The notes below the pieces were generated by a model. It was not told the origin of the DNA. It was given only the letters and a program-made list of their open reading frames with translations, and did no database searches. Positions 592 through 12,200 of a stretch of DNA of 64,000 nt are shown piece after piece. The stretch's first letter is position 1. Every line of letters begins with the position of its first letter. A program made the position numbers and the translations under genes. The DNA is taken from assembly GCA_000708835.1 (NCBI GenBank), contig DF237119.1:1-64000 (forward strand), given 5' to 3'. Source of the DNA: Klebsormidium nitens. Its lineage: Eukaryota; Plantae; Klebsormidiophyceae.

Positions 592-2472
592 GTGCAGCGC
601 CAGGCTACCATGGCTGACCTGGCAGCTGCATATGGTGTTTTCATCAGCTATTGCGGCGATGTTAGAAGGGACTTTGCTGTCATGCTGAGAGCGGAGCTGG
701 AGAGGGTTGGAGTCCATTGTTTTCTGGATGTTTCCAGCCTGATGCCTGGGGACAATGTTGACGAGCGGTTGCTGTTTGCAATGCAGACGGCTTCAATTGG
801 CATTGTCATTCTCTCGCCTCGTTTCTTTGAGGGGGAGTGGTGCATGATGGAATTGCACACATTTATGACCAGGGGAAACGCAGTCCCAGTTTTCTTCGCG
901 TCACTTGAGGACTTGAAGGAAGCCCGAAATAAAGCAGTGGCGGATCGCATATGGGAAAGGTTTGGACGGAGATTTGGAGAGATCACAGAAGAGCAGTACT
1001 TAGGGGCTGTTGATGGGGTGCTGAGAACCACTGGACTCAGGCTGGAAGCGCTTGATGGTTGGTGGGATGAGTGCGTTGAAAAAATTGTCCCTGTGGTGTT
1101 GAGAAAGCTTGACAGCAGTGCACGGTTATCAAACCACGAGCAGCTCATAGGCTGTCACGAGCATCTGAGCAATCTCAAGAGGCTGCTGGGAGTACCAAGT
1201 GCCGGGGTGTCCAAAGGAGCGGAGGCAACGTCCAAGGAAACCCTCCTGGTTGAGATCACGGGCATGGGTGGAGTTGGCAAAACGGCCTTGGCAAAAAAGT
1301 TGTACGACGAGGGGGATGTCAGAAAGTGGTTCGGCGGGAATGTGTGCTTCGTGTTCGTCGGTGGAAAGAGCACATGCAGCCGCCAGGAGCAGATTCTTCG
1401 GGAGCTCTGCGACGTAGATGTCAGTATCGAGAACCCTATGGCTGGTAGAGCGGCGATCAAGGAGAAGCTCCATCGCAGAAAAGTGTTTCTTTGCTTGGAC
1501 GATGTGACAAACGCAACAGAGGTGGTTCGGGTGGAGGATCTAGGGCCGGGCAGCCGGGTTGTGACCACGAGTCGGAGCAAGGAAGCCATATCCAGCCTCG
1601 AGTACAAAGTAGAGCTGCTGGACTCCGACGCTTCCTGGAAGCTGTTTTGCTGGCATGCTTTTGGTGGCAAGAATCCTCCTGAGGACTTGGCTCTCCTGTG
1701 TTCAGAAGTCATGAATTTATGTAAAGGCTTGCCCTTGGCCATCAAGGTTTTAGCCCGGCAACTGATGGCAGCAGAAGATCATCACAAGCGTCGCCTTTTA
1801 GAGGAAATTTTGAGACCTCGGGTTGAGGAGACCCGTCAAGAAGCATCAGACCTTCTTTGGGGTGGCTACAAAGCTCTGGAGCCGGCCGCGCTGCAAGACA
1901 GTCTTGTGCTCCTTGCTGGCATGTGGCCTAACTCCCGGGAGTTCAGGGAGTGCGAAAGTGTTGTGAGGAGTCTTGCGGCTGCTGTCTATGGGGAGGAGCC
2001 AGACGCGCGTTTGCGGCTGGAGGCGGCTAGGAGGGCCCTCAAAAGCCTTGTTGATAGAGGACTGATCCAGCTGGGTGGACAGAAAGACTCGCCTTGGGTC
2101 ACTGTTCACGATCTTGTACAGGAGGTTGCCCTGCGTGCCATAAAGGAAAGCATGCGGTTTTGCCGCATAGAGAAGGTGGCCAGTGCTCTTCCCCCTCAGC
2201 AACTGGGCGAATTGGGAGCGGAGCACGTAGTGCTAGAGCTGGGTCCTTCTGAACGACTCTCAGAGAGCTTCTTTGCTACAGTTTCTAGCACCAAGTCTTA
2301 TGTCCTGTTTGGCGGCCCAGGGGGCCACGTTCAATTGCCGAAGTTGCTCAAGCCTGGCCTGATCGGCTGTAGGCTCTTGAGCATTGGGGGTCTCCAAGGT
2401 GGAGCCCGGAGAAGGAGGTTGAAAAGGGAGCTCGTCAACCTCCAGTGTTTGAATGGCCAGCTTATCGGCAAG
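592..2472 (+). CDS. TIR-NB-ARC (NLR-type immune receptor), first coding exon
   Basis: 637-aa ORF. TIR: VFISYCG...FLD...IVILSPRFFEGEWCMMEL (catalytic Glu position kept). NB-ARC: P-loop GMGGVGKT, kinase-2 FLCLDDV, RNBS-B GSRVVTTSR, GLPL (KGLPLAIKV), MHD-like VHD. Strong donor AAG|GTGAGT at 2473; the unspliced ORF would stop at 2505. Confidence 0.93.
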
Positions 2473-2557
2473 GTGAGTATCAGGCTTAGCGGACATTCTG
2501 AATAGCAAGGGCCCATCTAATTGTAGAAACTACTCAACTAAATGTTTCAGCGTTGAG

Positions 2558-2687
2558 TTGATAAAGGTAGTGCCTTTGGGGTCCTGGACCTGCTTACGCC
2601 GATTGTTGGCCACGAGCTGGGCGAACAGTTTGCGCCTGGTGGAGCGGACCGGGGATGGAAAGCTGGCCGGACGGACGACCTCATCAA
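2558..2687 (+). CDS. Small probable exon linking the NB-ARC exon to the COR-like exon (acceptor uncertain)
   Basis: Donor CAA|GTAAGC at 2688 in the frame AFGVLDLLTPIVGHELGEQF...DDLI(K) is phase 2 and joins acceptor 3217 to give DDLIKALESKGIL. The 5' junction with the phase-0 donor at 2473 could not be made to fit this frame. Confidence 0.4.
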
Positions 2688-3216
2688 GTAAGCTGACAGC
2701 TTCTCTGTTTGTAAACGTCGTTTCTTGGCCCGGGCATCTGCTTCAAGTCCATCCGTCCAACTTTGTACGGGGTGAAAGATTCTGATCTGACTGCGGTCGC
2801 TTTTGGCATGTCTGCAACGTGGAAAGCAATTTTTCGAAGTGAATTTGAGTTTGGCTGTGCATTAATCTTATGAGCTTTTAGAACTCTGCATCATCACGTC
2901 TACACTTTGGAAGCTCCCTTGTAATTCTAGGCTTTCAATTGAACCATGGGCTTATCCTAAGTTGCAAAATGCTTATTGGAGCGTCACCACTTCTACCTAA
3001 GCCTTGATTGTTCTTACCGTTTAGGCCTTGATAAGGTGCTCCCATGCTGCAATAAGTTGCTTCTTTGAATTTCTGAGGATCTCTGAATTGGTTTGTGTAC
3101 GGTTGACCTTCAGTCTACAGCCGTGTTCAGGACACGGCCACGTTTTGGAGTCGAATGCGGTCTAGGACTTGGTTGGTTCGTATATTGCTGATTGCTCGCT
3201 GTTTTCTTTCTCCCAG

Positions 3217-4070
3217 GGCCCTCGAGAGCAAGGGCATCCTCTTCCACGACCTCCTCGACCTGCTGCCGGCAATTCGGAAGCTGTCGGAAGAGGGCTTCCG
3301 AGCCCCCGCAGACGAGCTAAAACAGTACGTCCTATACCTGCTCCGGAGTTTCGGACTTGCGTACCCAAGCCGGGACGACAGCTTCGACTACGTGCCCATG
3401 CGGTGCCAGGACCAGACGCCGGCCGACCTCTTCGGGGTGGGCTTCCCGCGGGCTCCGATGGCTGCAGAACCCCCGTCCGCCCAGCTCTTCGGAAAGCGGG
3501 TGCACTTCGAGTTTGGGGTTCCGGAAGGGTTTGCCGAGAACGTAGTTGTTAGTCTTCAAACCCAGCTGGTTCACCACTTCGGCGGGGAGGGCCTGCCCTG
3601 CATCGTGCAGCAGTGGGAGCACGGCACGCTGTTCCAGGCCTGCGTCCGGCCAGGGGGGGCGGCCGACAACCACAACGGAGCCCGGATCCGGATCCTGCTG
3701 CGCGTTCCTCAGGAGGGGGGTGCGCGGGACGTGTTCGAGCTCTTGTGGATGCTGTCGGAACCGGGCGAAGCTGGCAGCCCAACCTTCGTCGCAAGCGAGG
3801 AGCTGGCAGCCCACGTCAACCGCTGGCTAAGCCACTTCTTGGAAGAGAAGGTCGTTGGCCTGGTGTCAGAGGTCTTCTGCCCGTACCTCGTGCCGCTGTA
3901 CGAGGAGCTCGTTGGCTGCAAAGGGCAGGTTTTGGACTCCGAACCGGCGACGAACGGGGAGTTGGGCGGTCACAGCGCTGCCGGGAGCTTGGAGGAGATG
4001 TCGTTGGAAGGGATGTACACGTGGCAAAGAGACCAGAGGCTGAGTGCTAGAGCCCGGCAGCTGTCGACGG
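3217..4070 (+). CDS. Exon encoding a COR (C-terminal of Roc)-like domain
   Basis: Acceptor tctttctcccag|G, donor G|GTGAGT at 4071, inside ORF 3155-4231. Pattern GIL..DLL...YLLRSFGLAY...YVP...RVHFEFGVPEGFAENVVVSL...QWEHGTLF resembles the recalled COR consensus (G.L...L, LL..F.L, Y.vP, F.F.P.GF..RL.V.L, W..G). The exon is well supported; the domain call is moderate. Confidence 0.55.
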
Positions 4071-5115
4071 GTGAGTTTCGGCTTGATTATTGCGGTTTCC
4101 AGTTTGGCGTAGCAGATCATTACAGAAGAGGGCCTAGCTCTGTGTTTCTTAGGGAAAACTGTGTCCGATCCTTGTCAGTGCCAAGGCGAAATTGCGGTTC
4201 GATTGCTTCAATTCCCAGCCGCTTAGTCTGAAGAAAGCCTTCGGTTTGCAGAAAGCATGACCAGCCCGATTGCAATAGCATGGCATGCATATGCCAAGTC
4301 TCCAATCATACGACCTCATGCGAGTCGGTCCTTCTCCCTTTTCAGTGGTTCCCCTTCTAGCTTTCTCTGAAGGGCCTGATCTGAATCCGCACAGGGAAAG
4401 GTGGACCTGCCTCGCTTTCGGACCGAGAGCCGACTGTGAAGGACGATTCGCTCGGCTTCGAGGAGTCCCGGAGTTCTCAGATTGCTCAGGTAAGTGGTAT
4501 GCCGTCACGACTCTTTGCGGCGGGCCACTTTTAGGAGTCTCTGGCGGAATCATAGTGGAACATCGCCTCAGAGGCGTTTCTCTTTTCAGCTTGTCCGTCA
4601 AAAACTACTTATGTCTAAGTAGAGGAGCTCGAGATATCTTTCGAAGTGCTTTGAGCACCCTGAGTTTCGGAAGTCCACTTTTCCTTGGAGAAATAATCCG
4701 AAGCGCGCACTTCAAGGTGAAGGAGCATGAAGGAAGACCTTATAGGAAGTTCAATCCAGACAAATCTAGTGCCTCTTGCGTGCCACCTTGTAGCATAGCT
4801 TACTTCCTCTATAAGTTTCGAAGACACTTCGGACATTTGCAGGTCGACTCGGAGTCACAATTCGCTTAACATTCTGATGTCAAGATCTTTCCTGTCCAAC
4901 ATGGCAGGATCGATTCAAAGTTGCGGGTGGCAGGAGAGCGTCCCTTTCTGCTTTGCCCTGCCGTTCTTGGTATGGGATGCTTGTAACACTTTCTGATCAA
5001 GTGAATTGTATATGGTCGGAAGTTTGTGCGAAGGGACACATCAAAAGAGTGCGCTCTTGAGGGTCTGCTTTCGAGTCTCCAAAGCCGTTGACTAATTACT
5101 TTTCGTGTTTTCCAG

Positions 5116-6694
5116 GAATGGGAGCTGGTGCCAGACGATTTGTTGACCATGAAGCAGGGGCAACTAAATGTCTCCTTCACACGGTTGGGAGCCCGGCAGG
5201 CCGTCTACTTCAGCCACTTCTTCAGCAACCGGCTGGTCGAGCTGAACGTGTCGAACGCATCTTTGGGCGGTATGCACGTCGACCTCACGCCGAACCGCCA
5301 GTTGAAGATCCTCAACGCCGGCTTCAACAACATCTGCGTCATCCAGAAAGGCAATTGGACTCTTCCGGAGTCTCTTGAGAGCCTCTTCCTCTACCGGAAC
5401 GGGCTCAGCAGTGTTCCCGCGCACGTCTCCAGCCTACCCTCCATTGCTAATTTCAACGGTGATGGTAACGAGCTCGTCAGCTTCCCGGACCTCAACGAAA
5501 GCGTCAGGACCCTCTCTCTCAGCCACAATCGGTTCTCTTCCCTCCCCCAAAAACGTCTTCGACACTTCGGAAAGCTGAGCGTGCTCGACTTGAAGGGAAA
5601 CTCCCTAAGCAAGCTGCCCTCGGAGATCGGCCTCCTTGTTGCTCTTGAGCAGCTCCTCCTTAGCCAAAACCACCTCGAAGAGCTCCCTTCTGAGATCGGA
5701 GACCTGCCATGGCTTCGGGTTCTCGACGTCGCCTACAACCGCCTTCAAACCCTACCGGAGACGGTTGGGCGGTTGACTCAGCTTGAAGAGCTCTTCGTCG
5801 GGTATCAGGGTGTCAGCTTGCGGGCAAAGGGACAGAATGGACATCCGGGGGAGAAAGCGGGTGTGTCGTGGGGCCTCGTGGGCGGCACCGTGGCCTTCGC
5901 CCTGCCAGAAACGCTTGTCGGAGACGGCCTCAAAAGCCTCCGGGTTCTCGCCAGTCAACGCAACAAGATGGGCCCGTCCCTGCCCGTCTGGGTCTGCAAG
6001 CTGCGGACTCTCGTCGAGCTAGACGTCGAGGACAACAACCTGGAGTTTTTGCCCGACAACGACAGCTTCTTGAGCGGCCTTGTCGCTTCGGGGTCCTGGT
6101 CGTGGCGATCGGCATATATGGTTGGTGGGGGGCAGAAATCTAGGCTGGCCCTGCCGGCGCTCGAGATCTTGTGTCTGAGTCGCAACCGCCTCAGGAGTTT
6201 TCCGGGGTGGATCGGGGAGAGCAGGCAATGCAGGGTCATTGAAGCGAACGGAAACATGTTGGAGCGGATTCCGGTTGAGTTCCACCGCCTCCATAGGCTG
6301 GAAGTTCTGGAACTGGGGGGCAACCAGGAACTGGGGTTCGTCAAGGCCGTACAGGAGGGCCCTCACGCGGTTAGACGTGCCTGCCACCTCAGGCTTGTTC
6401 GGGCTAGGGCGTTCTCACTTTCCGCCTCCTTCCTCATGGCGCTCCTTGCGTTGGTATTCGCCAGCTCTCTCCCTCGCGCGCTCGGTCAAGGCGAGGCCTC
6501 CTGCGCAGCGCCGCGCGCCAGGGGCCACAGCGCGCATCCCGTCCCGCTTGACCTCCTGTCAGTGGGCCTGCTCTTCGTCCTCGTCTTGCTGGTGCGACTA
6601 TGGGAAGCAGTTGGCTGGGTAGCCCTTGGAGTCGCGCCCACCAGCTCCGGTGCCGCTCGCAACGCCGCCTCCAACCATCCCCCGGAACTGAGAG
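5116..6694 (+). CDS. Leucine-rich-repeat exon ending in two hydrophobic (TM-like) segments
   Basis: Acceptor gtgttttccag|GAA; ORF 5128-6780. Many LxxLxLxxNxLxxLP repeats (LSVLDLKGNSLSKLPSEIG, LEQLLLSQNHLEELPSEIG, LRVLDVAYNRLQTLPETVG). Then SASFLMALLALVFASSL and LLSVGLLFVLVLLVRLW. A small exon 4395-4489 (phase 1 in, phase 0 out) can join it in frame to the COR-like exon. Confidence 0.88.
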
Positions 6695-6741
6695 GTGAAG
6701 ACATCGAAATTGATTGCTGCCTGATTTCTAAGCATTTGCAG

Positions 6742-8440
6742 GGGTGCAAGCTAACCGACTCGGGGATGAGGCAGCCGTAGTGCTTTCGACCAGCCTTCAG
6801 AAACTCCGAACGTGGGTGCTGATATTTTGTCGGAAATCATTGAAGGTGCATGACCGCGAACAGTCGATTCCACCCATCCAGATCTGGAGGAGCAATCGCT
6901 TCATAATAGTGCAGTTTCTGTCTGTAGGTTATCATTCTCGATCGGTGATGCACGTCGATGGTGTCTTCTCTTTTTTGGAAGGGTCCGCAAACAACTGCTT
7001 TTCGTTCTCTGACAGACGAGGAGGAGGAGTGGCTGTTTCAAACACAATCGGGGTCTGCCTTTCCGGCCAACGACCCGGAGCTCCAGTCGCCACCGTCAGA
7101 GGGCCGGGTAAGCGCACTCTCTTAAGGGGCACAAGCCCAAATCCGTAAATATCATGGATGATGAAAGTTGAAAGTTTACGGGTTGAAATATCGCTTCCTA
7201 TACTGTTTAAGTCTTTACGCATCACGTGCAAACAGTTTTGTTGAGGTGTCCGCTCTGTCCATTTGTTTGCACGATGAACTCAGTGATTGTTTCTCGAGCA
7301 CGCAGCTACTTTGTGTCTGGTCTTCATGCAATCGAGCTTGCCACCTGGCAGCGAAACGAAGTTGTCCGTACTTTTTACCAAACGAAAGAGCGCCGAAGTT
7401 TTGCTGGGCAGACTCTTGACCACAATCTTTCTCAATCTTGAGGAGGCTTACCCGGGCCAAACAACCCGGGGGAAGTCCTACAGCATTGAAGAGGGCGGCA
7501 TTCCTTCGATGCAGGCCGTTTCGTTGGCGCCAATTCAGTCCCTGAGCGTCAAGCTTTCAATCAGCGCATCGGAACTGGCCCTAGAGGAAAACGGCGCGGC
7601 GGAGCTGGCGGCCTTCGAGTTTGACGGTAAGTATGTTGCTCGCTTCGCCGTTTCTGAGCAAGGGGTGACTGAGGAAACGCTCTAGTAGACTGTTTAAAGT
7701 GGGTGCATTTACACAGTCAGCTCGAGTCGGCAAATTCCTGTTGCTTATCATAAACTGCCCCCTTTCGTCAAGCGCTCGTGCAAAGACAAATCGGTGAAGA
7801 CTGGCTGAAGTGAAGCTACGAGCACGTCCAATCCTGAAACTCCACCTCCTCATGTCAAGGTGAGGACGAGCGTTCAGCTGCCAAGAACGACGTCGGGAGC
7901 AACGGTGGCGGCATGCACAAGCAGGGGAAGGATGCGGACCCCTTAACCAGGACTTCTGCTGGTAAGAATACTCGGAAAACAAGTCAGTGTTTTGAAAGTC
8001 AGCATTATGCAGATTGGGGATGCCAAACGTTCACAGAATGTGTCTTCGAGCTTTTTTTTGTCATGACAATATCAGGAAAAAGGTACGTGGATATATATTC
8101 CACGGCAAGTCCAGATCCGATAGGACATGATTTCCTGTAAGAGGGCATACTGCTCTTCATCGATTTCAATTGCTTTGTTTTTCAAGCAATTACAAGTCGA
8201 AAAGGTCGGTCATATAACGTCTCGAAACCGCATCCCGGGTGTGACGTACTCGTGCGGCCTCTTAAACGTTCGGCGTCAAAGAAGAACGAATGGCGCGAGC
8301 TAAAGAGCGGATTGTAGCACTCATGCAGCGCAGGTCTCCACAACTTGGACCCGCCACTTGGCGTTTCAGGATTTGTGCAGTTCATTCTCTGCCATTCTCC
8401 TCCTTTTGGTCCTTGCAAGATGCCTGGCCGGTCTTCTTGA
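6742..8440 (+). CDS. Probable terminal exons of the LRR/TM gene (6742-6811, 7412-7626, 8334-8440)
   Basis: Phases chain 1/2/1: GVQANRLGDEAAVVLSTSLQKLR|TLLTTIFLNLEE...AAFEFD|GLHNLDPPLGVSGFVQF...RSS*. The first intron would be only 47 nt (6695-6741), so the model is tentative. Confidence 0.45.
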
Positions 8441-9286
8441 CAAAGTTTAACGCCTGCAAGCTTTTCTGTAGGATTTGAGGTGTTCCAAAGGTATGATGGG
8501 CGACTTGCATGTAATATACCTCACTATCATGTTCAAGCCTACCTGAACATCACGCAGAACGCCTCGTCTATCGCCGTAATGAGTCTGAATAGGGGTTTGA
8601 AAGCCTGGAATTTGCTAACCACTATGTAACCCATTTTTGGTAGGTGGTGGAGACGGAACGCCTTTTGCGTTGGACGAGGGAGCGCGCGGCGAGGAGACGG
8701 ACCTCCTGCTCGCGGTCGAGAGAGCTCAGGTACGAAGCTGATTGTGGGACGGACTTAGCTTAAGATGGGCTCGTTTCAATGCGCAGACACAAGCTTCATC
8801 TTAAGCTGAACCTGCTGTCCGTGGCGGTTTCAGCATCGATATCAGCATGAAACTACCGCGGAATAAGCAGCATTACTCGCTCAATGGCAGTCACGCAATA
8901 GACGCCCCTGGAGGGCGTCAGTGAGGCGAATGTCAACGGGAAGATCTCTCAGGGCAGCCTCGAAGCCCCCTCTCTACACCGAGGATCTGAAAAGGGTGTC
9001 GTCCCGCTCTTGTGTGTCTGCTTCCTGTGTATAGTTTGAGCTGGTCCTATTAAAGCTTGGAGGCCGTCTTTGGCACTTCGGAACCTTAATTGCTCAGGAC
9101 ACTTGAAAACTCTTGACGTACATTTGCTTTCGTATTCCAGGCGTCTCATTCCTTGGTTTGCACCTGTTAAGGACTTCTCATTCAAGCGGATTGACATCTG
9201 TACTTGCTTAAGGTGCTGCTATTCCTTCTTAGCAGGCTGCTCGACGACTTTCCGCACCTGCCCAAAGAGGCGGAGATGCGGTCAAC

Positions 9287-12200
9287 ATGCAGTCCCCCAG
9301 CGAGCCTCAGGATCCGGATATGGGCCACCCTAACGGATGTGCTCAAGCTTTTGCAATCCGGCAAGAAGAAGATGGCTTAAGGTACGCTGCCCGTAGCTTT
9401 TTACGACATGCTCGTGAGCGGTTTTCTGTGAAAGCGGCTGTCTCCGGTGCTGGTGTGCTTGTCAGAAGGTGCCTCTCACAAGGACGACTTCAAAGAACCG
9501 TGCTTTTGGAGCTTCCTTTTGGTGTGGCGTCGTTGTCGATTAGCGGTGCTTGATTAAGCAGGCCAGAAACTTAACGTTGTGTCTTAATTTGACCAGGTTC
9601 GCGGCGCCCAAGAGACTCGCCATCTTGGAGGGCGGAGGATGCTGCACCCTGACCGCGTCCGGCCGGGAGGTATCTAAACGGCTTGCGCGTTCCGGCGAGG
9701 CACCAGCTCAGAGCGGTGCTACAAAACCAGAGAATCGTGCCCAGTCTGACGATGCCTCAGGTAATGCAATCAACAAAAGCGCTTTCTCTTGAGAAGAGAT
9801 TCCTTGAGTCACGCAAAAGGAGAGACGTTGAGCGTCATTATGGTACAGTACGAGTTGCGTGCGCTTACTCAGATACGCTCCCTTTCATTCGTCGGAGCAC
9901 TTGGATGCGGGCGCAAGGCTAGTTCGCTGACCACCCTGGGAAAGTTGGAAGGGCGCAACATCTGTTGACCGGTTCTGTGCTTCAACCACTCACATCTTTC
10001 ACAACAAAGTAAAGTTCCGCACTCCGCAGATGAGTCCCTACGGCCATAGTGCTTGCTAAACGGGGCCTCATTTGCTGTAAGACCTGTCGTAGTCATTCCT
10101 CGGTACATGCAGCTGCTGGTTTACTGCGGTGGTTCTCGGCACTTCCATGGGCGGCGCTTTTGACCTCCGCTAATCCCATTTTGTCTGTTCGCAGGGTGCA
10201 CTAACCGCCGGGCCAGCTTGCAGCAGCTTCACGATGGAGTCCGCCGGGCTCCGCAGCGCCCGCCCTGCGGCTTGCGTTCCTGCTACTCCTCGCTCTCCTC
10301 CCGGTCACCTTTGCAGACTCCCCGGTTCCTTCTGCGCTTGCGCTAGGGACTAGAGAATCAGCCCGGGTCGAGATCCACCTGTCTCTTGGATCAGCAGACA
10401 TCCACCTCTCGCTCACGCCAGCAGAGCTATTGGCCGGTCTCGCCATCGTCGTAAGTGGCGTCGTTGGCACAATCCTTGCTCTAGTGCTGCTTGTGACAAG
10501 TTCGCATCAGCCGGCCCCACCTCCAGCTCCCCCCAGTCCTGCCCCGTCCCCTAACCCCGCCGCGAGCCCTTCCCAAGACCCCGGAAAGACGGTAGGGCCA
10601 CGATACGTGCGCACTTTCGAGTGGCCGGTTACGCCTGACCAGAAGCCGGTGTGCCCGAAGCTGCACAAGGACGTCGCGAAACAAGGCAGAGTTGTGGATC
10701 GGGTCCTGCAGAAGCCCACTAGGGGGGGCGCTGTCACGGTGAGCTTCCGTGTCAAACGCTTCTGGAAGGGAGTCTTCTTCCGTGAACACGGGTATCTTTG
10801 GATACGATTAAGAGTGCGAAAGCGTCCAGCGTTCACCTCCGTTCCTGCAATCCGTTGGTCAAGAGCAAGATGCAATCGCTTCTAGAATGCGACTAGAACG
10901 CCGTAACGGCGTTGCCCAGTCATGGTTCTCGTCTGCTTGCGAGGAGCACAAGAAAAGCAAGCGGCCGCATGCATTTCGTGTGCTTCTCTCTTGACTTGTC
11001 GACTTGTGTGCAGGTGTATTCCACCTGCACCATCAACCATCCTGCGGACTTCAAAGAGATGGGCCAGCCGTTGAAGGTCGTCACAGTGACGTTGAAGGTG
11101 TATTCTCAGCATCACCGGCTGCCCGAGCTCCTGGGCGAGGACAAAGAGAAAGATCACGGCTTTTACCAGGTCAGGCTTCTTCTCATATCTTGCGCGCAGC
11201 CATGATTTGCGGAGCCGCACTGCGGAGAATTGGACGCGGGAGAAAATCAGCTTCTTGGCTCTCCTGGGGGCATCTTGAGACCACGTCGTAACCCGTCAAA
11301 TCCGGAGAAACAGTTTCAGATTCGGAGCCTCCGCGGGTACCTTGCCGTTTCGTTTACTGGGCGACCGACAAGCACGTTTGAGGATAGTCAGGTCGCCCTC
11401 TGAGGTCGTTGTGGACATGTTCTCTTACGCCCCATAATAATCATGCTGGCACCTCGCGATGTGACAAGTTTCTAGTATGCCGAAGCGCTGAATGAGAGAA
11501 TGACGGGGTTTACCGAGCCGTTCACTAAGTGCCGCTTCGCATGCATCTGCAGGAGAAGATGCGCGTCAACCTGCGGCCGAAAGATCCTCGGGGGTACAAA
11601 AAGCAGCCTGCGGTGCCAAACACCGACGATTTCCAGCGGCAGGTTGATCAGACTTGCAAAAATGTGAGGAAAATCCACTATTACAGCGGGTCTCATTGCT
11701 GGATCACTCCACTCTTGCCCTGGTACTCCTTTTCCGTCTTCTAGGCATCAGTAAACGGAGGCTCCAGCAAAAGGAAGCTCCCTTATCATTTAACAATTGC
11801 GAACACCGTTTCCTTGTTTGCAATCATCAATCTCAGCATCTCGAAAGTCGAATAAACGTTGCTTCCAAGGACCTTAAAAGTGTGGACAGACACCTCATCG
11901 GCTTTGCAGACACAAGGGATCGAGGCAAACGGAGTGCTGGAGTTCACGGGGGTGTTTCCTTTCGTGAAAGTCAGCGGCGGCGGTAAACGGACCTCCGCTT
12001 CGGAGGCTCTCACTGCGGTCAGGGAGCTGGAGCGACCCATCGTCGTCCAGGAGGAAGGCGCCGTGAGCAACAAGCAGGAGTTCACTTGGTCAATCTGCTT
12101 GGGCCGAGAGCACGAGCGGTCGGCCCTTCTTGCGAACGGGGAGGTCAAACGAAGGATAGTCCCGCCTGAGCAGGGCCCTATCGTGGAGGACTATTGCACC

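Follow-up and report, generated by a model that had tools for sequence, protein, structure and literature searches.

We describe an expressed, immune-receptor-like gene at the start of a 64,000-nucleotide stretch of Klebsormidium nitens DNA (the window, whose first base is base 1 of NCBI record DF237119.1, assembly GCA_000708835.1, Klebsormidium nitens/flaccidum NIES-2285) and propose that it comes from a so far undescribed family of hybrids between NLRs (receptors with a nucleotide-binding part and leucine-rich repeats) and Roco proteins, and that it has lost the Roc GTPase core. Three long co-oriented open reading frames (ORFs) dominate positions 592-8440 (592/610-2505, 3155-4231 and 5128-6780), and the deposited gene call on DF237119.1, which is the first gene of the scaffold, covers 610-12425 and has as its product one protein of 2,071 amino acids (P0003). 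The main mRNA of this gene keeps five in-frame stop codons and does not encode one continuous protein. Comparison with relatives supports the prediction that the locus is, by descent, a chimera of STAND and Roco proteins with a conserved two-helix membrane anchor. A preliminary description, made from the DNA letters, had proposed a chimeric STAND/Roco-derived receptor, possibly membrane-anchored, in the form of a single polypeptide with TIR, NB-ARC, COR-like, leucine-rich repeat (LRR) and transmembrane (TM) parts. The Roco-derived, membrane-anchored ancestry is supported by homologues of the middle exon that always follow Roc and COR-A, by the remnant of a COR-A tail at 2581-2687, by a conserved splice donor and by a two-helix anchor common to the relatives; the single polypeptide is not supported.

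The TIR-NB-ARC reading frame

The first ORF (ORF1) matches the Pfam TIR families PF13676 (1.7e-15) and PF01582 (2.3e-10) and the NB-ARC family PF00931 (2.8e-26). When its TIR is aligned to that of flax L6 (3ozi, 3e-9), the catalytic glutamate is conserved (WCMMEL against WCLMEL), and the P-loop GMGGVGKT, the Walker B motif LCLDDV, the GLPL motif as GLPLA and an MHD-like VHD can all be read in the translation. Among the solved structures whose sequences were searched in the PDB, the best matches of the NB-ARC are plant NLRs, namely an NRG1-like protein, ADR1, Sr35, ZAR1, Roq1 and RPP1. Homology to L002, one of the relatives treated below, runs through ARC2 and ends near residue 517, and the last ~114 residues match nothing. 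ORF1 has the TIR with catalytic glutamate and the NB-ARC motifs of a plant-type TIR-NLR, and it departs from that type in having no LRR in the polypeptide of the NB-ARC, as the dominant mRNA in four sequencing runs keeps the stops at 2503-2556.

Transcript structure

In 20 public runs from seven studies about 70% of the sequence words of the stretch are present, which is the pattern of intron-less transcripts. Contigs of four runs, each from another study, were placed on positions 2350-8349 (6,000 letters), and the coordinates of joints are given after cut shifts. In these four runs GT..AG joints without mismatches were found at 2687>3217, 4070>4395, 4489>5116, 6694>7016, 7107>7515, 7626>7860 and 7961>8644, and one reading frame is open from 2557 to 8729 through all seven of them, so that the earlier expectation that every junction from 2687 onward could be spliced in frame is borne out junction by junction. 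Because intron sequence is present only as traces of 1-3% depth (the exception being intron 2688-3216), the four runs are RNA. Together with the Pfam matches and the alignments, the RNA joints also confirm the TIR with its catalytic glutamate, the NB-ARC, the long LRR exon, the two hydrophobic helices and the small 3' exons as they had first been read. The longest contigs, of 7.5-7.7 kb, run from ~510-630 to a point ~2.1 kb past 7963, so that the unit of transcription extends further than 8440, where the gene had been thought to end, and a further exon starts at 8644. Contigs of two runs join the TIR-NB-ARC half and the downstream half, and the two separate transcripts that had been considered for these halves were not what the contigs gave.

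The first of the seven introns stands apart from the others. Some 60-70% of transcripts retain intron 2688-3216, whereas for the other introns the figure is 1-3% or less (retained against spliced depth 123.8 and 87.7 in run X1, 66 and 31.4 in run X2; in the other two runs the retained path was chosen), and it supplies an in-frame ATG at 3155, which is a possible alternative start for the downstream ORF. The stretch from this ATG to the end of the intron (3155-3216) reads as a short hydrophobic, Arg-rich leader, MRSRTWLVRILLIARCFL..., which runs straight into the COR-B-like exon. One explanation of the locus builds on this intron and takes the gene to make two working products that act as a pair, a TIR-NB (TN) protein and a membrane LRR protein initiated separately at ATG 3155 on transcripts that retain the intron or start internally. 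The strong retention and the ATG would suit such a pair, and depth is slightly higher downstream than upstream (289 against 247 and 76 against 60); however, contig depths are coarse, and many upstream AUGs precede 3155 on the long transcript. We regard it as somewhat unlikely that the gene works in this way.

Between the two halves, over 2350-2688, the mRNA of the four runs is colinear with the genome and free of mismatches, so that ORF1 ends at 2505 and the mRNA keeps, after its TAG at 2503, the in-frame stops at 2518, 2524, 2539 and 2554. The dominant transcript accordingly carries an intact TIR-NB-ARC ORF of 631 amino acids and, ~50 nt past its stop, a second ORF in the same frame that is open from 2557 to at least 8729 (~1,000 codons) and that encodes a COR-A tail, a COR-B-like domain, an LRR, two TM helices and an acidic tail. 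The deposited model of 2,071 amino acids bridges the stops by an intron, 2400>2567 (...GGLQG/SAFGVL...), that is absent in all four runs and is the sole junction without RNA support among the first nine of that model. Formal in-frame GT/GC..AG solutions over the stop cluster number 108, none of which is seen in the RNA, and a hypothetical 78-nt intron at 2473-2550 would still leave the TGA at 2554. An assembly error at the stop cluster was also considered and was ruled out, as genome and RNA of four studies agree letter for letter at that place.

It is unlikely, in our estimate, that the gene nevertheless makes one fused receptor, TIR-NB-ARC-(COR-A tail)-COR-B-LRR-TM-TM, by a cryptic or condition-dependent splice that removes the stops, with the unspliced form as a regulated truncated isoform. 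Such a receptor would account for the shared frame of the two ORFs, for the intactness of the downstream one and for the contigs of two runs that join both halves, and in-frame GT/GC..AG pairs do exist, including 2400>2567 of P0003 and 2473>2616/2628. Yet no such joint appears in the four runs at depths of 55-290, at which other joints and intron traces of 1-3% are visible, and the candidate acceptors are without pyrimidine tracts.

Relatives and family architecture

An exhaustive HMMER search with the middle exon against 1.84 billion representatives returned six proteins only. One is the deposited model, and the other five are ORFs on contigs of eukaryote-like character that carry no annotation, with SRR23617307, SRR14092358-60 and JGI 3300060285 among the source records of the relatives. 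A word search with the six-sequence profile of that exon added no members. A search of the literature for the accession numbers of these relatives found nothing. In all five relative loci the homologue of the middle exon stands directly after an ORF with Roc and COR-A and before a long LRR ORF with a two-helix anchor, and in none of the five is there another COR-B candidate at that position. The Roc of the relatives is of the Roco type, with matches to M. barkeri Roco2, LRRK2 and C. tepidum Roco at 1e-13 to 1e-9. The N-terminal modules differ, with TIR-NB-ARC-LRR in L001 and L002, a TIR in L007 and ten TPRs plus an LRR in L003, and the whole layout of L001 and L002 is TIR-NB-ARC-LRR-Roc-COR-LRR-TM-TM. 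We take the modules of each relative to be exons of one gene, as would be expected from their co-orientation, from the conserved donors and from the K. nitens transcript that links both halves.

Compared by tblastn with the TIR, NB-ARC, middle exon and C-terminal LRR of these relatives, the window has matches of 36-57% identity to each, in the same order and orientation, and it belongs with the L001/L002 layout by its homologous parts, their order, the helix pair and the conserved intron. The LRR is recognized by Pfam in ORF 5128-6780 (LRR_8, 9e-25), its exon is 31-43% identical to the LRR exons of the relatives, and it is followed by two hydrophobic segments of 19 residues each (6409-6465 and 6538-6594). 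Two strongly hydrophobic 19-mers lie just past the C-terminal LRR at equivalent places in all five relatives, and the two helices are therefore a character of the family. All matches of the relatives fall within 595-6459, which rules out a paralogue elsewhere in the window.

Two relatives have peculiarities of their own. At 1-6115 of L003 the ten TPR repeats and the LRR replace TIR-NB-ARC before Roc-COR-LRR-TM-TM, and MOV10-like helicase ORFs lie upstream on the opposite strand. In L002 a single in-frame stop (2685-2687) stands between the TIR ORF (2211-2687) and the NB-ARC ORF (2688-3854), which share one frame; a tiny intron, a nonsense mutation or an error in the sequencing of the metagenome contig could account for it.

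The middle exon

The exon at 3217-4070 had been called COR-like from the outset. Its position after Roc and COR-A in the relatives and a COR-compatible fold agree with that name; a sequence match was not found, and its structural Z scores are tied with those of generic folds. In Pfam and NCBIfam neither ORF 3155-4231 nor the middle exon matches any family, and COR-A and COR-B gave no match even at E 5; a profile search of the PDB sequences gave chance matches only (a nodavirus capsid, 0.01), and an ESM Atlas feature search gave low recognition. A word search with the Roc-COR-A exon of a relative returned only eight unannotated family exons, and there was therefore no independent COR-B profile for hhalign.

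The AlphaFold model built from the six sequences (pLDDT 65, pTM 0.62; an earlier model from three sequences, pLDDT 45, was too poor and was set aside) begins with two helices and a beta hairpin, after which comes a beta-alpha-beta4-alpha2 domain. Foldseek ranked the COR of C. tepidum Roco (CtRoco) third, with E 1.3e-3 and probability 1.00. With VIA-align, model residues 10-222 align to residues 706-885 of CtRoco chain 3dpt_B (Z 8.6, root-mean-square deviation 4.6, 149 aligned), and LRRK2 8txz aligns over chain residues 1624-1806 (Z 7.3, 157 aligned). In a fold search independent of Foldseek the Roco chains reached Z 7.0-7.6, and DUF4468, METTL16 VCR and KA1 domains reached Z 8.1-8.8. Taking both comparisons together, alignments that span the two halves score Z 7.3-8.6 for CtRoco and Z 7.0-7.5 for LRRK2.

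These scores, as high as or higher than those of the Roco COR, and the empty searches of Pfam, NCBIfam and PDB sequences are what speaks for a different explanation, that the middle exon is a family-specific domain of other origin than COR-B and resembles COR by coincidence. However, the DUF4468, METTL16 VCR and KA1 matches cover only the second half of the model (residues ~78-220), and among the matches listed essentially only the Roco chains (CtRoco and LRRK2) align colinearly over both halves, with the longest alignments (143-157 residues) and at the COR-A/COR-B boundary. Moreover, the exon holds the COR-B position in every relative, with no other candidate for that part, and we consider a foreign origin of the domain decidedly unlikely. 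The predicted fold is compatible with the end of COR-A plus COR-B and is not diagnostic of it; the COR-like assignment is supported mainly by context, that is by the conserved position, the conserved intron and the COR-A remnant.

The COR-A remnant and the proposed loss of the Roc module

Of the relatives' LRR1, Roc and COR-A exons, tblastn finds nothing in the window apart from the COR-A tail at 2581-2655. This remnant matches the ends of the relatives' COR-A exons (L004, 60% over 25 amino acids, E 1e-5; L002, 71% over 17 amino acids); it reads VLDLLTPIVGHELGEQF...DDLIK, the relatives read VVDLLKPI(V/L)GH(E/Q)L...(E/D)LI(R/K/Q), and the last residue of the exon is the homologous one. At exactly the position and in the phase (2) of the RNA-verified donor 2687/2688, a canonical GT donor is present in four relatives. 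On the other side of the gap, the LRR1 exons of the relatives end in phase 0 with a GTGAG donor, as the frame of ORF1 does at AAG-GTGAGT (2472/2473). No Roc or Ras match of Pfam was obtained in any ORF of the window or in P0003, the sequence taken whenever a complete protein had to be searched, nor was any match to PF16095, and only the last 25-43 codons of the COR-A exon (2557-2687) are left. Two features of Roco proteins, a Roc GTPase domain and a COR-A directly after it, are missing at the K. nitens locus, and because it has no Roc domain the locus does not encode a Roco protein in the strict sense.

We think it probable that the K. nitens locus is a member of a small membrane-anchored Roco family in which an internal deletion took out all or most of LRR1, the whole of Roc and the greater part of COR-A and left an unspliced stub that keeps the five stops. 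The family layout would be a variable N-terminal module, LRR, Roc, COR-A, COR-B, LRR and two TM helices, the N-terminal module being here a plant-type TIR-NB-ARC. The deletion would have run from the LRR1-to-Roc intron into the COR-A exon, with breakpoints that we infer, and would have left an 84-nt stub, 2473-2556, as the 5' part of the ancestral LRR1-to-Roc intron. As this stub would be without a usable acceptor, it would stay in the mRNA with its five in-frame stops. Scanning ribosomes would then make mainly a truncated TN-type protein with a TIR NADase and an NB-ARC switch and no sensor LRR, and the downstream ORF would be translated only from minor isoforms, or from transcripts that start in the retained intron or read through it (ATG 3155), or not at all. 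In intact members of the family, sensing by the LRR may pass through the NB-ARC ATPase and a Roc-COR GTPase dimer to a membrane-held TIR NADase. The opposite history, in which the layout without Roc is ancestral and the relatives gained LRR-Roc-COR-A by insertion, is hardly credible, since a piece of the COR-A tail, with its conserved exon end, is still present in the window and since Roc-COR-X-LRR-TM2 (X being the middle exon) also occurs with other N-terminal modules (TPR in L003, TIR in L007).

Several points weigh against a deletion that left two separate reading frames in a former Roco gene. The ORFs of the relatives were joined into single genes from their sequence and not from RNA. Contigs drop rare isoforms, so that a minor splice that removes the stops could escape them, and two halves joined in an assembled contig need not come from a single molecule. 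The shared frame, together with a downstream ORF that is intact over seven or more introns, though it has no obvious start codon of its own when spliced, argues for continued use. Finally, the COR-B assignment is without support at the level of the sequence, and it is drawn from a medium-confidence model (pLDDT 65) with Z scores tied with those of KA1/START-like folds. If the deletion took place as proposed, the intactness of the downstream ORF across at least seven introns speaks either for its continued use or for a recent deletion.

Relation to known systems and significance

The gene resembles the plant TIR-NLRs (Roq1, RPP1 and, for its TIR, L6) in its TIR with a catalytic glutamate, in its plant-type NB-ARC and in an LRR that follows downstream in the same transcription unit. 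It differs from them in having no continuous TIR-NB-ARC-LRR ORF in the main mRNA, no match to C-JID or another post-LRR domain, COR-derived exons between NB-ARC and LRR, and two TM helices past the LRR. In tobacco N and Arabidopsis RPS4, intron retention brings in-frame stops past the NB region and gives truncated TIR-NB products; at the K. nitens locus, in contrast, no form other than the unspliced one was seen, and the "intron" would be a deletion stub without a proper acceptor. With Roco proteins (C. tepidum Roco, LRRK2, M. barkeri Roco2, plant TRN1 and the brown-algal LRR-ROCOs, PMC11378527) the family shares the LRR-Roc-COR-A of the relatives, and the window contributes its COR-A tail and a putative COR-B-like domain; unlike them, the window has no Roc, and members of the family carry in addition an LRR and a TM hairpin at the C-terminal end, some of them also a TIR-NB-ARC at the N-terminal end. 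For the middle exon, sequence similarity was detected to none but its six family proteins, and so it is not recognizably TRN1-like.

From the range of accessions we take DF237119 probably to correspond to kfl00170 in the K. flaccidum gene set. A survey by Andolfo et al. 2019 (PMC7145615, Suppl. Table 3) lists seven NB genes of K. flaccidum, among them kfl00170_0010, described as "TIR-NB-LRR; NEL; dynein LC1 domain; Transmembrane region". This is probably the gene model discussed here, which is the first gene on DF237119.1 and fits the description. The survey makes no mention of Roc and treats the fused model as a full-length protein (PMC7145615), and for both K. nitens and Chara the sole entry in Teng et al. 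2024 (PMC11378527) is "LRR-ROCO". In the literature on algae and in NLR surveys we found no description of a fusion of NB-ARC with Roc-COR or Roco, and a search for the gene in a proteome supplement for K. nitens found nothing.

NLRs and Roco proteins are two large families of LRR-coupled NTPase switches that have been proposed as plant and algal immune receptors and have been treated as separate lineages. If the architecture of the relatives is as it appears, a complete LRR-Roc-COR-LRR membrane protein preceded by a plant-type TIR-NB-ARC would mean that, near the streptophyte base, one receptor had come to hold both switches. Perhaps, and we put this forward tentatively, there is in algae akin to Klebsormidium a class of dual-switch, immune-receptor-like proteins, undescribed so far and anchored in a membrane (TIR effector, NB-ARC ATPase and Roc-COR GTPase, flanked by two LRR blocks and a C-terminal TM hairpin). 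The K. nitens gene would then be a derivative of this class that lost Roc by a natural deletion, is still expressed and acts as a split pair (TN plus a COR-B-LRR membrane protein) or by conditional splicing. As the sole member with a public gene model and RNA data, the K. nitens gene offers a concrete entry point. It also corrects the record, as a model that has probably been counted as TIR-NB-LRR in surveys of NLR origin contains a fused ORF that rests on an intron unseen in transcripts and an extra middle part that would be Roco-derived.

Features of the locus and neighboring sequence

Table 1. Parts of the gene and of the deposited model, in the coordinates of the window
Feature	Position	Strand	Remarks
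ORF1	610..2505	+	631 aa, ATG 610 to TAG 2503-2505; TIR ~637-912, NB-ARC ~1237-1794, ARC2 with VHD to ~2160, then ~114 residues unmatched in relatives
Intron-like stub, not spliced out	2473..2556	+	Starts AAG-GTGAGT (2472/2473); five stops in the ORF1 frame; TTTCAG 2545-2550; contigs colinear
COR-A exon 3' remnant	2557..2687	+	Homology 2581-2655; exon end ...DDLIK; open in the frame joining the next exon
Intron	2688..3216	+	GT..AG, 529 nt; spliced in some transcripts, retained in more; in-frame ATG 3155
COR-like exon	3217..4070	+	Putative winged-helix end of COR-A plus COR-B-like alpha/beta domain; no Pfam match
Linker exon	4395..4489	+	Small; from RNA joints and frame
LRR exon and helices	5116..6694	+	LRR to ~6340; hydrophobic helices 6409-6465 and 6538-6594; from Pfam and relatives
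Small exons	7016-7107, 7515-7626, 7860-7961	+	Acidic, low-complexity; from RNA joints and frame; unmatched in relatives
Next exon	8644..8741	+	Donor CAG-GTACGA (8729/8730); TGA 8739-8741 if the donor is unused; loose ends of four contigs map to 8646
Seven further exons of the deposited model	9236..12425	+	Gene call only; no Pfam domain, no counterpart in relatives

The last third or so of the 2,071-aa model (9236-12425) may be a separate gene that was merged into it. In this part ORF 10430-10885, with a hydrophobic N-terminal stretch and a Pro-rich linker, is skipped by the deposited model. At position 7730 one low-depth intronic contig of run X7 has T where the genome has G; an error or a difference between strains could explain this. 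The scaffold's next called gene runs from 13763 on the minus strand, and its product of 1,141 amino acids has a weak F-box-like match.

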